Sequence record: LC727701.1
DNA length: 64,000 bases
Strand: one strand, 5' to 3'
Part shown: positions 33,120 to 56,426 of the stretch, piece by piece
Position numbering within the stretch: position 1 is the stretch's first letter
Layout of the letters: every line of letters begins with the position of its first letter
The notes under the pieces: generated by a model
Told to the model about the DNA's origin: nothing
Seen by the model: the letters and a program-made list of their open reading frames with translations, nothing else
The model's database searches: none
Translations under genes and position numbers: made by a program

Positions 33120-35231
33120 TTAAAACCGCATATATGCGGGCTGATATGGTTTATACATACGTGTATCAAAGTCATTAAAATCAATTGCGATATCATACTT
33201 CTCAAATGATTCTTTTAGCATCTGATAAATGATTTTATTTTCATCAAAATTATTATTTTTATCAACATAACTTTCTAATGACTCTGTGATCTCAAATGGA
33301 GATTTAATACCCATAATAGCTTCAACCATCGCCTGACTCCATTTTAGAATGTCATCTGACCTTGTTGAGATATTCGGTTCATCTTCTGTATCGAGAGTAC
33401 ATTGATATACGACTGTTTGTGAATCCTGACCTTTACGGTAAATTCGAGCAATAGCTTGTTCTAGAATGTAATGCCTAAACGGTGAATTAATTGTCACCAT
33501 AGTATCAGCCATCGTCATACGGACCGCTGTTGAAAGGGAAGCATATGTAGCTACCAATGGATTTAATTTAGGGTCTTTCTCAAATCTACTGATTATTTGA
33601 GGTAAATTGTCATTGGTTTTACCATACACCACCGCCGGATGCATACCTAATTTATTGGTGTACTTATCAACAGTATCAACAACCTCAACAAACGATGTAA
33701 ATGCAATCGTTTTCTTCATAGTTGATTCAGTGATACCAACCCAGTCAATATACGGTACCATGTCCACATGGCACTGAATGCGTTTAGCACCTAAAACCCT
33801 TCCCAAACATTCACCTTGTATCTTTAGCATAACGTATTTTATAACTGATTTAATATCTCTAAAAGCAGCTATTTCATTACGAGGTAAAGTTGGCTCTATA
33901 AACATTTTTTCATATTGGTTAGATTCTTTAATTTCTTCACCAATGTATCGCGGGTCTTGATTCTTCTGAATTATTTTAATCAAATTCTTATAGCGAGCGA
34001 AACCATCTTTCTGCGCCTGGGTCTTAAGAGAGTTCTCGTGTATCGCCATTAGTTTAGCCCAATACTTCTCATCTTCTGGTCGGCGCGCAGCATAGAACTT
34101 TACACGTTCTCTAATAAAAGCTTCACAATCACGTTTAATGGCATTAAGAGTATACTGTGATCCATTTGGTATCTTGATACGATACGCTTTTATCCTCGGT
34201 GGTAAAACCTCAGTATCTTTCTTTTCAATGACGTACGCAATTAACCCAAAGCGATGTTGGACAATATCTAATCCTTTCTGTGTCTCTTTTCCAAATGCTT
34301 TCTTAAAACGTTCTTCAACCTCATTGGTGAAGAGATCGTCTAATACTCTTAATGCACTTACTAATTCAGAACCAAGTGCTTTAACAGGGGTACCTGACGC
34401 TAATAATCTGTTATTAGAGTTAGACATAAAACATATTTGCTGGAACTTAAGAGATTGTGCAGAATTAGGATCGTTCATATTGTGTGATTCATCCAGAATC
34501 ACCGTAATGCTCTTACCTTTGAATATACCGCTTCTTAATAGATCAATTATTTTATCTTGCGCCTGGTAATGGGATATAAGTATTCTTTGACCGTTGTAGG
34601 CTTTATCATCAATGGTCGACCATACTTTTTGTCTTTCCTTATACATCTCAATAATAGATGGCTTCCATATTAGATCAATAGACTTCTTTTCACAAACAAC
34701 TATAATGATATCCGACTCAACCATTTCAGCAATAGCCATCGTCATGAATGTCTTACCAGTACCAGGTTTACCTGCAACAATATCACCACGTAAACCATAC
34801 TGGTCAATTCGATAATTATAATTTTCAAAATAAGCTTTTTGAGACTCATCTGGTGTAAATGTCAATTTGTCTAACATCTTGAAATTGAGTCTACCTGGTA
34901 CAGAGTTGGTATCTACAGGACGAGTATTTTTTAACCAGGTATATTGAAGCATTGCTTCACGGATGGCATTAACAGTTTTAATAGAGATGTATCTACTTCT
35001 ATAATTCTTTACTGCTTCTAGCATGTAATATATTTCAGGAGCAAAGAATTTATAAAATGAAATACTACGACGACTAACCGTGTTAAATAACTGCGTAGCT
35101 AATTTAGTGGTTCGCCAATACTTGTTAATATCTCTAATGAATGCAGCACCATCAAAACCACTGATGATAATTTCTTGATCAGTTTCAGTAATTGATAGCG
35201 AGCCCATTAGCTTCCTAAATGAGTCTATCAT
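33120..35231 (-). CDS. SF2 (SNF2/DEAD-like) helicase, gp203-like
   Basis: GKPGTGKT Walker A, ILDESH Walker B, LASGTP motif III, QAIARIYRKGQ motif VI. Confidence 0.9.
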   Translation of the reverse strand: MIDSFRKLMGSLSITETDQEIIISGFDGAAFIRDINKYWRTTKLATQLFNTVSRRSISFYKFFAPEIYYMLEAVKNYRSRYISIKTVNAIREAMLQYTWLKNTRPVDTNSVPGRLNFKMLDKLTFTPDESQKAYFENYNYRIDQYGLRGDIVAGKPGTGKTFMTMAIAEMVESDIIIVVCEKKSIDLIWKPSIIEMYKERQKVWSTIDDKAYNGQRILISHYQAQDKIIDLLRSGIFKGKSITVILDESHNMNDPNSAQSLKFQQICFMSNSNNRLLASGTPVKALGSELVSALRVLDDLFTNEVEERFKKAFGKETQKGLDIVQHRFGLIAYVIEKKDTEVLPPRIKAYRIKIPNGSQYTLNAIKRDCEAFIRERVKFYAARRPEDEKYWAKLMAIHENSLKTQAQKDGFARYKNLIKIIQKNQDPRYIGEEIKESNQYEKMFIEPTLPRNEIAAFRDIKSVIKYVMLKIQGECLGRVLGAKRIQCHVDMVPYIDWVGITESTMKKTIAFTSFVEVVDTVDKYTNKLGMHPAVVYGKTNDNLPQIISRFEKDPKLNPLVATYASLSTAVRMTMADTMVTINSPFRHYILEQAIARIYRKGQDSQTVVYQCTLDTEDEPNISTRSDDILKWSQAMVEAIMGIKSPFEITESLESYVDKNNNFDENKIIYQMLKESFEKYDIAIDFNDFDTRMYKPYQPAYMRF

Positions 35232-35299
35232 TGCATTTTTCCTTAAGGGGTATGTAAATATAACTCTAAGTCATAAGATTAGCTAACGAATAAAAATAC

Positions 35300-35465
35300 G
35301 CACAGTGCAATGATATAGAGCAAGGCAGTTTGCGTAAAACGCACTGCACTTTAAGGGGGTGATCCAGTCGTAAATCAACCGGGGTACTAAAGTATCGTCA
35401 GGAACGACACGAGCCCCAACTACGGTGCCTTGCTACTTACCGACCTCTAGATAGGGGTCGGACCT
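35300..35465 (+). ncRNA. Candidate structured non-coding RNA or regulatory leader, no family recognised
   Basis: GC-rich non-coding island with a 9-bp long-range helix (35319-35327/35426-35434), nested stems and a 3' hairpin, followed by a terminator. Confidence 0.55.
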
Positions 35466-35472
35466 ATTACAT

Positions 35473-35503
35473 TAAAGGAGCCCACCAGGGGCTCCTTTAT
35501 GTC
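35473..35503 (+). terminator. Intrinsic terminator
   Basis: TAAAGGAGCCC-ACCA-GGGGCTCCTTTATGTC. Confidence 0.8.
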
Positions 35504-35581
35504 ATTCATTATAAATTAATTTAAATCTATATTACAGGATTACCATAAAGATATTTATCCTTTTATAATGAGGAAAAGATT

Positions 35582-35977
35582 ATGTCCGATATTAATAGCA
35601 CCAATGTAACAGATGAATTAGTACCTTATTTTCCATCGGCGGATGCCATTACTAATTCTACTATTAGGGATGAAGTAATTCCTAATATTTTGTTATTCTA
35701 CAAGAATGCTTTTAGTGACTTCCAACACGTTAGTAATATCACAGGTACTAACCAGATTGCATCAGGTTATTTACCAGGTGTAGGTTATTATTTCGAGTAT
35801 AGTGTTACCGGTAATGCTAATCTTATTCCACCTGAAGCAATTAAAGTATTACGTAATGTAATCACTAAAAATGGATATAAAGATGACATTACCATTACAC
35901 CAAAAGGTTTTGGCCTAATCAATTGGTTCATTGTAAGAGTATACGTAGATGAGCAAATTAAGAAGACTACTCAATAA
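35582..35977 (+). CDS. Hypothetical protein (131 aa)
   Basis: GAGGA RBS. Confidence 0.75.
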   Translation: MSDINSTNVTDELVPYFPSADAITNSTIRDEVIPNILLFYKNAFSDFQHVSNITGTNQIASGYLPGVGYYFEYSVTGNANLIPPEAIKVLRNVITKNGYKDDITITPKGFGLINWFIVRVYVDEQIKKTTQ

Positions 35978-54266: not shown

Positions 54267-55336
54267 TGGAACAATATCTTAATTCAATTCGTTTAGTTAA
54301 AGAACTCGGTGTACATAAAGGTGATCGTACTGGTACTGGTACTCAGAGCATGTTTGGTCAACAAGAACGTTATAGTTTACGTAACAACGTTCTACCCGTA
54401 GTAACTACTAAGAAAATTCATCTTCCATCTGTTATCCATGAATTATTCTGGATGCTTTCTGGTGATACTCGTGTAGATTATTTAATTGAAAATGGTGTAC
54501 GCATTTGGAATGAATGGGTTAAACCAAATACTGCGGTATATCGTGAGTTAAATCAAGAAGAGCTTGACTCAGCTATTCTAAAGAAAGTTGGTGGTCCATT
54601 TGCCCTTTATTTTCATTGTCTAGATGATGAAGTAATCATTCAGACTAGAGATGAGTTTGAAGCTTCTTTAAGTGGTGCTGAGATATTTAGCTTTTGGAAT
54701 CAATATCCAACCATTAATATCGAAGCTACCCATGTAGTTGGTGTTAACGCCGACCGCTGGAAGTTAGTATCTACTCTAGATTTCGATGAAAGTGTGACAC
54801 CAGAACTAATTAAATATGAATATGGTAAACGACTATATAAATTGCTATTTGGTGTTAAGCCTCTAAAACTCATCGGGGGTGATCTAGGTGCCGTTTACGG
54901 TAAGACATGGCGTGATCTCGAAGATACCCGTGTGATCCCAAAACACGAGTGGGCTGTTTACGAGGCACGTGGCTTTGACTTCGTAGTTGATATTCCAGGT
55001 ACTTACATGGAGAATGATCGGTGTGTTGTAACACGTCGTATTGATCAAATTCAAGACGTGATTGATCAACTTAAGACAAACCCTGATTCCCGTCGAATCA
55101 TCGTTTGTGCGTGGTCACCGCAACTCGTTGATGAACAGGCGCTCCCACCATGTCATAGCTTCTTTCAGTTCTGGACTCGTGAACTGACGCTAGAAGAACG
55201 GTATGACTGGGTCAAACTTAACGACACTGAAGCTCAACGTATTTTCCTTGAAGGTGCGCAACCGGAAACTGATCACGCACTGTGGGATAAACTTGGTGTT
55301 CCTAAACGTGCATTGAGCTGCCAGCTCTACCAGCGT
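54266..55336 (+). CDS. thyA: Thymidylate synthase, exon 1 (357 codons)
   Basis: DRTGTGT, TTKKIH, WNEW, GDLGAVYG, SRRIIV, ALPPCH, LSCQLYQR; ends at CGT before the intron. Confidence 0.95.
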
Positions 55337-56426
55337 TAAATACTAGCGCCTTCTAGGAGCAATCCTAGTCGAATAACCTATCTAAACGGGGAAACTCTCT
55401 ATGAGACAATCCCGTGCTAAATTGACTACGGTCATAAATGCCTAACGACTATCGAAACCACTCTGAGAAGAGGAAGGGAGTAGAGTAGGACCAAGTGGTC
55501 CGAAAAGGTAGGGGTCTCTTTTTAAGAGATCGTGATATAGTCTGTCCTGCATGGAGACATGCAGCGGTTTACTTAATGACTCCGCCAGATAAGGAGGGTG
55601 TTATTAATGACGTAGCTTATGTGTATTGCCTATTCACCAAAGAAGGAAAGGTATATGTCGGAAGTGCGCGAGATTTAGTTAAGCGCGTTCAACGACATTT
55701 CAGAGACCTTAGTAATTCCAAGCACCATAACTACCCATTACAACAAGAATACGATAACGGTGAAAGATTCTCGTTAAAGTACTATCGTTGTGAAAGTCGG
55801 GAATCAGCATTTACACTCGAACAGATGTGGATAACCAAGCATGAAGAAGAAGGTAACCTTCTTAATATTGGTAGACACTCCAAGGGTGGTGATAACTTAA
55901 CCAGGCATAACCTCAAAGAACAAATCATCGAGAAGCGGAGTGATACAATACGTATCAGACTTGATGAGATTGGAGCCGAGGCTCGTCAGGAAAAGTATGG
56001 TCGACCAGGTGAGCAGAATGGGATGTATGGTCGTACTCACACAGAAGAAGTTAAGGTAGCTCTATCCGAGTTACACACGGGTAACACTTACCGTCTTGGC
56101 ATTAAAGCTAGTGATGAGACAAGAGCCAGGATGTCGGAGATAGCTTCTCAGAGAACAGGCGAACGTAATCCATTCTACGGTAAAACACATTCCGAAGAAA
56201 CCAGAAAAAAGTTGGCGGATAACAAACGCGGTATAAAGCCAACTAACTCAAACAAACTTGAAGTGGACGGTGTTGTTTATTTATCCCAGGCCGATGCAGC
56301 TAAGGCTCTCGGAGTATCACAGGGTACAATAACATACCGAATTAACAGCAAGAATCCAAAGTATTCTGGTTATAAAGTCATTTAAGTAAACGGCTCAGGA
56401 TTAACGACCCTGGGTGAACATAAGAG
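55337..56426 (+). mobile_element. Group I (IA2, T4 td-like) self-splicing intron, 1090 nt
   Basis: P1 with U-G at the 5' splice site; P2 CTAGGA-GCAA-TCCTAG; core CTATCTAAACGGGGAA..GACAATCCCGTGCTAAAT; P7 GACTA (55447)/TAGTC (55538); P9 CTGCATG-GAGA-CATGCAG; 3' end GATTAACGAC..GAACATAAGAG; splicing restores LYQR|SVDTFLGKPFN. Confidence 0.95.
55576..56385 (+). CDS. Intron-encoded GIY-YIG homing endonuclease (I-TevI/I-BmoI-like); start codon uncertain
   Basis: AYVY-x9-KVYVGSARDLVKRVQRHF catalytic domain; two NUMOD3-like repeats (GEQNGMYGRTHTEE, GERNPFYGKTHSEE); C-terminal HTH (SQADAAKALGVSQGTI). Confidence 0.9.
   Translation: MTPPDKEGVINDVAYVYCLFTKEGKVYVGSARDLVKRVQRHFRDLSNSKHHNYPLQQEYDNGERFSLKYYRCESRESAFTLEQMWITKHEEEGNLLNIGRHSKGGDNLTRHNLKEQIIEKRSDTIRIRLDEIGAEARQEKYGRPGEQNGMYGRTHTEEVKVALSELHTGNTYRLGIKASDETRARMSEIASQRTGERNPFYGKTHSEETRKKLADNKRGIKPTNSNKLEVDGVVYLSQADAAKALGVSQGTITYRINSKNPKYSGYKVI

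Follow-up and report, generated by a model that had tools for sequence, protein, structure and literature searches.

To our knowledge, phages control host translation almost exclusively through proteins, and we know of no bacterial or phage small RNA (sRNA) with a seed that targets the anti-Shine-Dalgarno (anti-SD) end of 16S rRNA. Described sequences with this rRNA end as their partner include ordinary Shine-Dalgarno (SD) sequences and the STAB-SD 5' stabilizers, such as the one in the Bacillus thuringiensis cryIIIA leader. Giant Pseudomonas phages encode noncoding RNAs (ncRNAs) of their own, several of which have been identified in phiKZ and 201phi2-1 by Grad-seq and ONT-cappable-seq, e.g., 5'UTR_gp40, 3'UTR_PHIKZ298, and an sRNA upstream of gp182/gp277 (PMC8545117, PMC10914365, PMC11512511). 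For PAO1 infected with phiKZ, Grad-seq, dRNA-seq, and ONT-cappable-seq data sets are public, and knockdown with antisense oligomers is established in this phage. Here, we describe a further RNA element, located in a 64,000-nucleotide (nt) stretch of sequence record LC727701.1 (the window, in whose coordinates all positions are given unless stated otherwise). The window derives from a phiKZ-type jumbo phage of Pseudomonas aeruginosa (100% identity to NK1 and ~99% to phiKZ in the stretches tested), and a window position plus 177,536 gives the corresponding position in phiKZ (AF399011). The element occupies a GC-rich island between the genes PHIKZ203 and PHIKZ204, and our analysis supports its identity as a conserved structured small RNA of giant Pseudomonas phages. 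Its most striking property, which was missed in an earlier reading made from the letters of the window alone (the sequence-only reading), is its complementarity to the 3' end of 16S rRNA.

Homologs were collected using BLASTN, three DNA-pattern scans of viral contigs, nhmmer, and a covariance model; chance matches predominated in the first two pattern scans and were removed by nhmmer. Among the Chimalliviridae that infect Pseudomonas, 13 lineages proved to carry the element. They include the phiKZ group (with SL2, W10-2, and GUMS), PA1C/PS119XW/HPP-Temi, PhiPA3, Phabio, 201phi2-1/Viktualia, and Psa21, as well as six uncultivated viral contigs (L010, L030, L124, L126, L148, and L157). Wherever a host is named, it is Pseudomonas. 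A helicase gene homologous to PHIKZ203 lies at most ~2 kb from the element in every lineage, with the relative orientation flipped in PhiPA3, while the gene 3' of the element varies and may be a gp204-like gene, the helicase itself (PhiPA3), or a convergent gene (PA1C). A separate locus search with the helicase protein as the query returned phiKZ itself only.

In all of these lineages, the element is either unannotated or overlaid merely by short, nonconserved coding sequences (CDSs). The longest plus-strand open reading frames (ORFs) span 6 to 29 codons, differ between lineages in position and frame, and include none that is conserved. Short hypothetical CDSs have been annotated on top of the RNA in HPP-Temi (L074:920-1338) and Viktualia (L073:2515-2604), with ORFs that show no conservation elsewhere; both are probably spurious. 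Rfam 15 contains no family for the element at the gathering threshold in a scan of the whole window, and cmscan of positions 35150 to 35650 at E <= 10 returned weak terminator-like matches only. The sequence-only reading had proposed a novel phage sRNA and had named an Rfam scan and a collection of homologs as ways to check it. Both now speak for that proposal: the scan yielded no family, which supports novelty, and the homologs from 13 lineages show compensatory changes and share no ORF. An upstream promoter-like motif, terminators, and a mapped plus-strand 3' end, all described below, point the same way.

The island itself is as that reading had portrayed it. The 350-nt spacer (35232-35581) contains a single ORF of at least 30 amino acids, a 31-amino-acid TTG ORF on the minus strand, and is otherwise free of ORFs; its GC content is 0.47 to 0.54 across 35300 to 35499, against ~0.32 in the flanks. 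The plus strand of the island folds better than shuffled sequences, with a minimum free energy (MFE) of -77.6 kcal/mol (z = -5.35 versus dinucleotide shuffles, with 0 of 200 folding as well); the minus-strand fold has z = -3.65.

MAFFT alignments of the homologs placed bulges inconsistently, and RNAalifold recovered only part of the structure. We therefore built a covariance model from 15 sequences, used it to realign them, and complemented it with an alignment-free arm-swap test, in which each lineage's 5' arm is combined in turn with the 3' arms of all lineages (2000 permutations). In the resulting model, a junction unites the long stem P1 that closes it, hairpin P2 on the 5' side, and an arm made of P5 and P3 that ends in a GNRA-capped hairpin; P4 and a terminator follow. 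Across the covariance-model alignment, four helices show compensatory change, the share of paired cells is 85.9%, and double changes have occurred in 15 of 23 pairs. The covariation score is 0.417, compared with 0.196 for shuffled partners (0 of 500 reach the observed value) and at most 0.14 when partners are slid by 1 to 3 columns. Arm swapping gave a consistent picture, as cognate arms paired more stably than noncognate arms for P1 (-11.7 versus -7.9 kcal/mol), P2 (-8.2 versus -5.8), P3a (-3.7 versus -1.3), P4 (-6.9 versus -1.2), and the terminator (-15.7 versus -6.0), and for each of these five helices no permutation out of 2000 matched the cognate energy.

All of the pairings put forward in the sequence-only reading are present in the window, and most of them recur in relatives. 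Covariation and arm swapping uphold AGCAAGGCA/TGCCTTGCT (P1), TGCG-TAAAA-CGCA (P2), GGGG/CCCC (P3), CGACCTCT-AGAT-AGGGGTCG (P4), and the terminator, while TCGTA/TACGG (P5) also holds, more weakly than the others. Two pairings did not survive the comparison. The 5' arm of AGTGCA (35304-35309)/TGCACT (35345-35350) falls in promoter-like sequence upstream of the conserved RNA, and no other lineage keeps this helix; because it is not conserved, the pseudoknot that was built on its crossing with P1 falls with it. Similarly, the GGTGAT/ATCAACC pairing has no partner in other lineages, the reference phiKZ sequence reads ATAAACC at the 3' arm, and GGTGAT belongs to an invariant linker, described next. 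We also considered and rejected a CsrA/RsmA sponge of the RsmY/RsmZ type. GGA motifs are not conserved: the P3a loop contains GGA in the phiKZ and PA1C groups and Phabio, not in 201phi2-1, L030, L010, or the Psa21 group, and the invariant linker lacks GGA in most lineages.

The linker, with the consensus A(A/G)GG(G/A)GGUGAUCCAG(U/C)C, is the only long invariant stretch of the RNA without a conserved internal partner, and no covarying partner for it was found in the covariance-model alignment. Its conservation exceeds that of the helices, with a mean top-base frequency of 0.92 versus 0.73. To define the rRNA sequence, we took the Pseudomonas 16S 3' end from 120 genome loci, of which 98, mostly Pseudomonas, terminate in ...GUAGCCGUAGGGGAACCUGCGGCUGGAUCACCUCCUUA. 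A whole-length RNAduplex comparison with the full 16S rRNA was uninformative, and ungapped-run and windowed tests were used in its place. In 15 of 15 homologs, it is the linker that forms the longest unbroken run of Watson-Crick or G-U pairs with any part of the 1,540-nt 16S rRNA, with 14 to 21 base pairs (bp; 21 in phiKZ), and in all 15 the duplex ends 0 to 1 nt from the 16S 3' terminus. Shuffled RNAs typically reach 10 to 13 bp, located anywhere along the 16S rRNA, and 0 of 300 attain 21 bp. Opposite 16S 1525 to 1541 (E. coli numbers, obtained by counting back from the 3' end), 14 of the 15 sequences pair at each of the 17 positions, and the three polymorphic columns of the linker all preserve pairing (A/G and G/A, each facing a U, and C/U facing a G). 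We also scored all 24-nt windows of the 64 kb on both strands (~64,000) against the last 22 nt of 16S rRNA. With -38.2 kcal/mol, the linker is the top site, ahead of a runner-up at -29.9 kcal/mol and a mean of -7.7 kcal/mol (standard deviation [sd], 3.2).

A second stretch of the RNA, CCCCAACUACGGUGCCUUGCUAC, which runs from the 3' strand of P3 through J3/1 to the 3' strand of P1, is also complementary to 16S rRNA and is colinear with the first. Its target, 16S ~1496 to 1517, lies directly upstream of the first site and covers the terminal part of helix 44 along with the 5' strand of helix 45. This duplex scores -26.5 kcal/mol, compared with -12.8 kcal/mol (sd, 3.0) for shuffles, and in 10 of the 15 homologs it outscores all others among the 377 windows along the 16S rRNA; it is weaker in Phabio, L030, L148, L157, and L126. 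In phiKZ, the two sites thus make the RNA a colinear antisense counterpart of almost the entire final 47 nt of 16S rRNA, with the P3 domain replacing the loop of helix 45, and the 5' strand of P5 is an antisense image of the lower stem of that helix. In E. coli, the helix 45 loop bears two dimethyl-adenosines.

The same motif occurs in a second, unrelated RNA of P. aeruginosa phages. In PAK_P3-like (Nankokuvirus) and Pakpunavirus phages, 164 records share a conserved small hairpin RNA that lies unannotated inside tRNA clusters, and its loop, GAGGAGGUGAUCCAG(C/U), provides a 15- to 16-nt complement ending 1 to 2 nt from the 16S 3' terminus. In PAK_P3, an 80-nt ncRNA candidate at 85937-86017 of that phage is listed in Table S7 of 10.1101/2023.10.13.562163, and this interval contains GAGGAGGUGAUCCAGC. 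The covariance model of the phiKZ family does not match the PAK_P3-type RNA, and the two are not homologous. Both sit in unannotated noncoding DNA and carry the same 16S complement, whereas the PAK_P3-type RNA is much shorter at ~60 to 80 nt, has tRNA genes as its neighbors, and carries the motif in the loop of a hairpin. That two unrelated RNAs of P. aeruginosa phages share the same long motif argues for selection on the motif itself. Separately, the supposedly empty gap between tRNA-Asp and tRNA-Cys contains tRNA-like 3' halves (GGTTCGATTCC...CCA) in JG004 (L285:48-459) and K8 (L286:205-459), and further unannotated tRNA genes may reside there.

Several features point to transcription of the element from the plus strand. 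Terminator hairpins are followed by a U-rich, UUAU-type tail on this strand only in the lineages checked, and a stem-loop followed by UUAU is the form of phiKZ terminators described by Putzeys et al. (PMC10914365). Behind the second hairpin, most lineages have a tail of the UUAU type; L010 and HPP-Temi show U-rich variants of it. The plus-strand helices hold 26 G-U pairs, which would be A-C mismatches if read on the other strand. ONT-cappable-seq mapped a phiKZ termination site, T095, at 213001 (+), which corresponds to window position 35465 (supplement of 10.1101/2023.10.13.562163). This 3' end lies 4 nt past P4 and ahead of the stronger second terminator. T095 belongs to no transcription unit and is not classed as intrinsic in the tables of that study, and the 3' end could reflect tandem termination or 3' trimming.

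The 5' boundary is suggested by promoter-like sequence. The middle promoters of phiKZ have a TACT centered ~22 nt 5' of the transcription start site (TSS), preceded by an A-rich run (PMC8244752), and the motif upstream of the element fits this description and also matches the promoters P082, P098, and P116 in the supplement of 10.1101/2023.10.13.562163; the mapped promoter P116 carries the same AATAAAAATAC. From the spacing of mapped middle promoters, we infer a start at ~35318-35320. TAC-N14-TATAG has a single exact match in the window, and we therefore rejected it as a general promoter motif of this DNA. A consensus scan for sigma-70 promoters and intrinsic terminators found nothing beyond chance, a result to be read with the fact that such consensus sequences miss phiKZ-type signals. 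Downstream of the second terminator lies an early-promoter motif, TATATTAC, which is also present 3' of the element in Phabio, Psa21, L010, L148, and L157, with near matches in L124 and L126. The ONT-cappable-seq tables contain no TSS call at this motif (35528-35535), which probably serves gp204.

Together, these observations suggest a separate sRNA gene whose invariant linker hybridizes with the anti-SD tail of 16S rRNA and thereby docks the RNA on 30S subunits or ribosomes, a proposal for which we see about as much reason to believe as to doubt. Transcription would begin at ~35318-35320, 3' of the middle-promoter-like motif, and the RNA would end at 35465 after P4 or at the second terminator near 35500, giving a product of ~148 to 183 nt. 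Over 17 to 21 nt, the linker would pair with the free 3' tail of the host 16S rRNA, a region made up of the anti-SD and the neighboring strand of helix 45, and 30S binding would depend on the linker stretch GGGGGUGAUCC. Bound in this way to 30S subunits or ribosomes, the RNA would resemble a nontranslatable super-SD sequence. Once there, it might compete with SD-led initiation, shield the rRNA 3' end, or bring a bound protein or its P3/GNRA domain to the platform; our data favor none of these consequences over the others, and both pairing in vivo and an effect on translation are predictions from complementarity. More broadly, the element may be a dedicated anti-rRNA sRNA of giant Pseudomonas phages that occupies, tags, or shields the mRNA recognition site of the ribosome, with a seed shared by the PAK_P3-type RNA, so that the two would represent a recurrent and so far unrecognized route by which viruses act on bacterial ribosomes through RNA rather than protein. 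We advance this wider view tentatively, with doubt slightly outweighing confidence. An RNA that does bind the anti-SD tail would constitute a new principle of host takeover or ribosome protection in a model jumbo phage that is also used therapeutically.

A number of observations weigh against this proposal. Regarding expression, no TSS for the plus-strand RNA is called in the ONT-cappable-seq tables, and the element is missing from the 17 phiKZ ncRNA candidates of Table S7 (both in 10.1101/2023.10.13.562163); the Grad-seq paper names, in its text, two other phage ncRNAs only. The comparison of MFE between strands is mixed, favoring the plus strand in 7 of 11 lineages. As to distribution, searching up to 6 kb away from the helicase gene revealed no copy in OBP, EL, Ralstonia phage RP12, Xanthomonas phage RTH11, or E. 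coli phage Goslar. The pairing itself raises further difficulties. Single-sequence folding gives the linker an unpaired probability of ~0.45, about equal to that of the remainder of the RNA, and pairing beyond the 13- to 14-nt free tail requires the opening of helix 45. In Psa21-like lineages, the change that weakens the second complement restores P5. Finally, phage mRNAs use SD sequences too, so blanket blocking would harm the phage, and the number of ribosomes to be titrated, in the tens of thousands, would call for RNA at very high abundance.

Some of these difficulties are what one would expect if the element were a genuine trans-acting or protein-binding sRNA whose 16S complementarity is a relic, such as the captured antisense 3' end of a host rRNA gene, or whose purine-rich linker binds a protein or phage or host mRNAs without ever pairing with rRNA. 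The minus strand is colinear with helix 45 and the tail of 16S rRNA, with the loop replaced by the P3 domain, as capture would produce, and the linker has no special predicted accessibility. Since P5 covaries internally and is kept in Psa21-like lineages at the cost of the second complement, the second site may be ancestral more than functional. Decay would be expected of a relic, whereas no part of the RNA is better conserved across six phage genera than the linker; the rare substitutions in it all keep rRNA pairing, and the unrelated PAK_P3-like family carries the same 15- to 16-nt motif. We consider this alternative unlikely, while giving it serious weight. Even if the pairing with rRNA fails, the element is a well-supported addition to the families of structured RNA, with helices that covary, in genomes whose annotation leaves this spacer empty or fills it with short, probably spurious CDSs.

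Other explanations assign the element a role in cis. As a perfect extended SD sequence with a codirectional gene within 55 to 255 nt in most lineages, the motif could hold a 30S subunit at the 5' end of read-through transcripts and protect or boost the downstream mRNA, in the manner of a STAB-SD or standby site. Against this stand the two hairpin terminators before the next gene, the mapped 3' end at 35465, and the early-promoter motif that separates the element from the next gene in at least six lineages; moreover, the downstream genes are unrelated between phages, the next annotated gene in PA1C is convergent, and such a role does not need an elaborate conserved junction. This makes a cis-acting loader improbable. 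Much the same evidence bears on the sequence-only reading's suggestion of an attenuating leader for the gene at 35582, which could be elaborated into a transcription-attenuating riboswitch for gp204 that alternates between P1 and GCAG/CUGC. These helices do overlap by 3 nt, Psa21-like lineages have an analogous GGUC/GACC overlap, and terminators follow the element. The overlap touches neither terminator, and because its bases are invariant, covariation neither supports nor rejects a switch and gives no evidence of two states. The Rfam scans returned no riboswitch or aptamer class, both terminators and TATATTAC lie between the element and the gene, and the identity of the downstream gene changes (it is the helicase in PhiPA3). 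Because a promoter motif follows the second terminator and the downstream gene is not constant, we conclude that the element is not the gp204 leader, and we regard an attenuator as very improbable. Least credible of all are a short translated ORF, which an extended SD sequence could in principle serve, and an HDV-like self-cleaving ribozyme, for which the sequence-only reading had noted a loose likeness in helix order. In phiKZ, no start codon lies at a usable distance from the linker, and no ORF is conserved across lineages; with respect to ribozymes, HDV-like or other, no model matched at E <= 10, and the pseudoknot helix has no counterpart outside the window's own lineage. The preferred reading thus remains that of a separate, ribosome-directed sRNA gene, at the strength given above.

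The surroundings of the element provide context for this reading. The spacer separates ORF 33120-35231 on the minus strand (PHIKZ203; gp203, a virion SNF2-type helicase with its start codon at 35231) from ORF 35582-35977 on the plus strand (PHIKZ204; gp204, with its ATG at 35582), and the records of the phage collection carry no RNA annotation in this spacer. Because the gp203 TSS lies outside the element, the element is not part of the helicase leader; this candidate, on the minus strand, was also rejected on the reversed orientation of the element relative to the helicase in PhiPA3. To the left of the element, the block GTCATAAGATTAGC (35272-35290; also in L078, L124, L126, and L157) reads in reverse complement, on the minus strand, as the late promoter of the helicase with its start region (...GCTAATCTTATG), which explains why the left flank is conserved as well. 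The gp203 homolog matches in two pieces, whose total span exceeds the gene by ~0.8 to 1 kb, in SL2, PhiPA3, phiHQ, and PS119XW (H251-H254), and two overlapping helicase CDSs are annotated in PA1C; the helicase gene in these phages may hold an insertion (an intron, intein, or homing element). Elsewhere in the window, the sole Rfam match at the gathering threshold is a group I intron (RF00028) at 55327-55564 (+) with 69.4 bits and E = 1.6e-15, covering the full model. The runner-up site of the anti-16S scan, CUCAUCGGGGGUGAUCUAGGUGCC at 54869-54892 (+; -29.9 kcal/mol), lies ~450 nt upstream of this match. ARAGORN found no tRNA or tmRNA.

Table 1. Features of the RNA element and its surroundings, in window coordinates except for the last three rows, which refer to the individual phage loci.
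Feature	Position	Strand	Remarks
gp203 late transcript start	35272	-	phiKZ P107, TSS 212808, late promoter (supplement of 10.1101/2023.10.13.562163); context only
Promoter-like motif, A-rich tract + TAC(G)	35286-35300 (TAC 35297-35299)	+	TAC-N14-TATAG spacing in 12/13 lineages; 2 nt longer in UViG_L010
TATAG	35314-35318	+	Invariant in all lineages; probably the initiator region
P1 5' strand, AGCAAGGCA	35319-35327	+	Pairs with 35426-35434; double changes in 5/10 pairs; 89.7% of cells paired
P2 extension, GCAG/CUGC	35325-35328 with 35344-35347	+	86.5% paired, invariant; shares 35325-35327 (3 nt) with P1
P2 hairpin, UGCGU-AAA-ACGCA	35331-35343	+	Compensatory change in core, C-G to U-A, in 5 sequences
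Linker region between P2 and P5	35348-35372	+	Invariant part 35352-35372
Linker, UAAGGGGGUGAUCCAGUCGUA	35352-35372	+	Invariant; complement of last 21 nt of 16S rRNA (E. coli ~1522-1542), including anti-SD tail
P5, UCGUA/UACGG	35368-35372 with 35421-35425	+	75% of cells paired; one pair shows C-G, U-A, and U-G; modest support
P3 outer stem, GGGG/CCCC	35381-35384 with 35414-35417	+	Double changes in all 5 modeled pairs
P3a hairpin, inside P3	35395-35407	+	GNRA tetraloop in 9/11 nonredundant lineages; stems covary, with differing sequence
Second colinear 16S complement, CCCCAACUACGGUGCCUUGCUAC	35414-35436	+	3' strand of P3 through J3/1 to 3' strand of P1
P1 3' strand, UGCCUUGCU (DNA TGCCTTGCT)	35426-35434	+	Pairs with 35319-35327
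P4 hairpin, CCGACCUCU-AGAU-AGGGGUCGG (DNA CGACCTCT/AGGGGTCG)	35440-35461	+	Arm swap 0/2000
Second hairpin terminator, AAAGGAGCCC-ACCAG-GGGCUCCUUU	35474-35498 (with tail to 35501)	+	In every lineage; stems covary; followed by AUG (UAUG-type sequence); has the phiKZ form of a stem-loop followed by UUAU
Early-promoter motif, TATATTAC	35528-35535	+	Core of mapped phiKZ early promoters, e.g., P091 and P099; context, outside the RNA
PAK_P3-type hairpin loop, PAK_P3	L284:409-424		
PAK_P3-type hairpin loop, JG004	L285:404-418		
PAK_P3-type hairpin loop, K8	L286:404-418		

How the element relates to described systems can now be stated. Compared with HDV-like ribozymes, the likeness is loose and limited to nested helices, high GC content, and a length of ~100 to 150 nt; the element differs in having no Rfam match, no conserved pseudoknot helix, and no identified conserved catalytic-core nucleotides. 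Like the published ncRNAs of phiKZ and 201phi2-1, it is short, structured, terminator ended, and conserved across genera of giant Pseudomonas phages. Unlike them, it resides at another locus and has another sequence, the published list tabulates only its 3' end, T095, and none of these published RNAs is reported to have a long 16S complement. With SD and STAB-SD sequences, the linker has in common both its partner, the 16S 3' tail, and its core, GGAGG or GGGGG followed by UGAUCC. Ordinary SD pairing involves 4 to 9 bp ahead of a start codon, whereas the element offers 17 to 21 bp without a conserved ORF, inside a multihelix ncRNA with its own terminators. The full-text literature that we searched, an incomplete set in which absence of evidence is all that can be claimed, contained no description of a bacterial or phage sRNA with a seed against the 16S 3' end. 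In its architecture, the element resembles the base-pairing sRNAs of bacteria and phages, as it too comprises a conserved seed, modeled as at least partly single stranded, within a structured scaffold that ends in an intrinsic terminator. The difference lies in the partner: those sRNAs target mRNA, whereas the best and only conserved complement of this element is rRNA.

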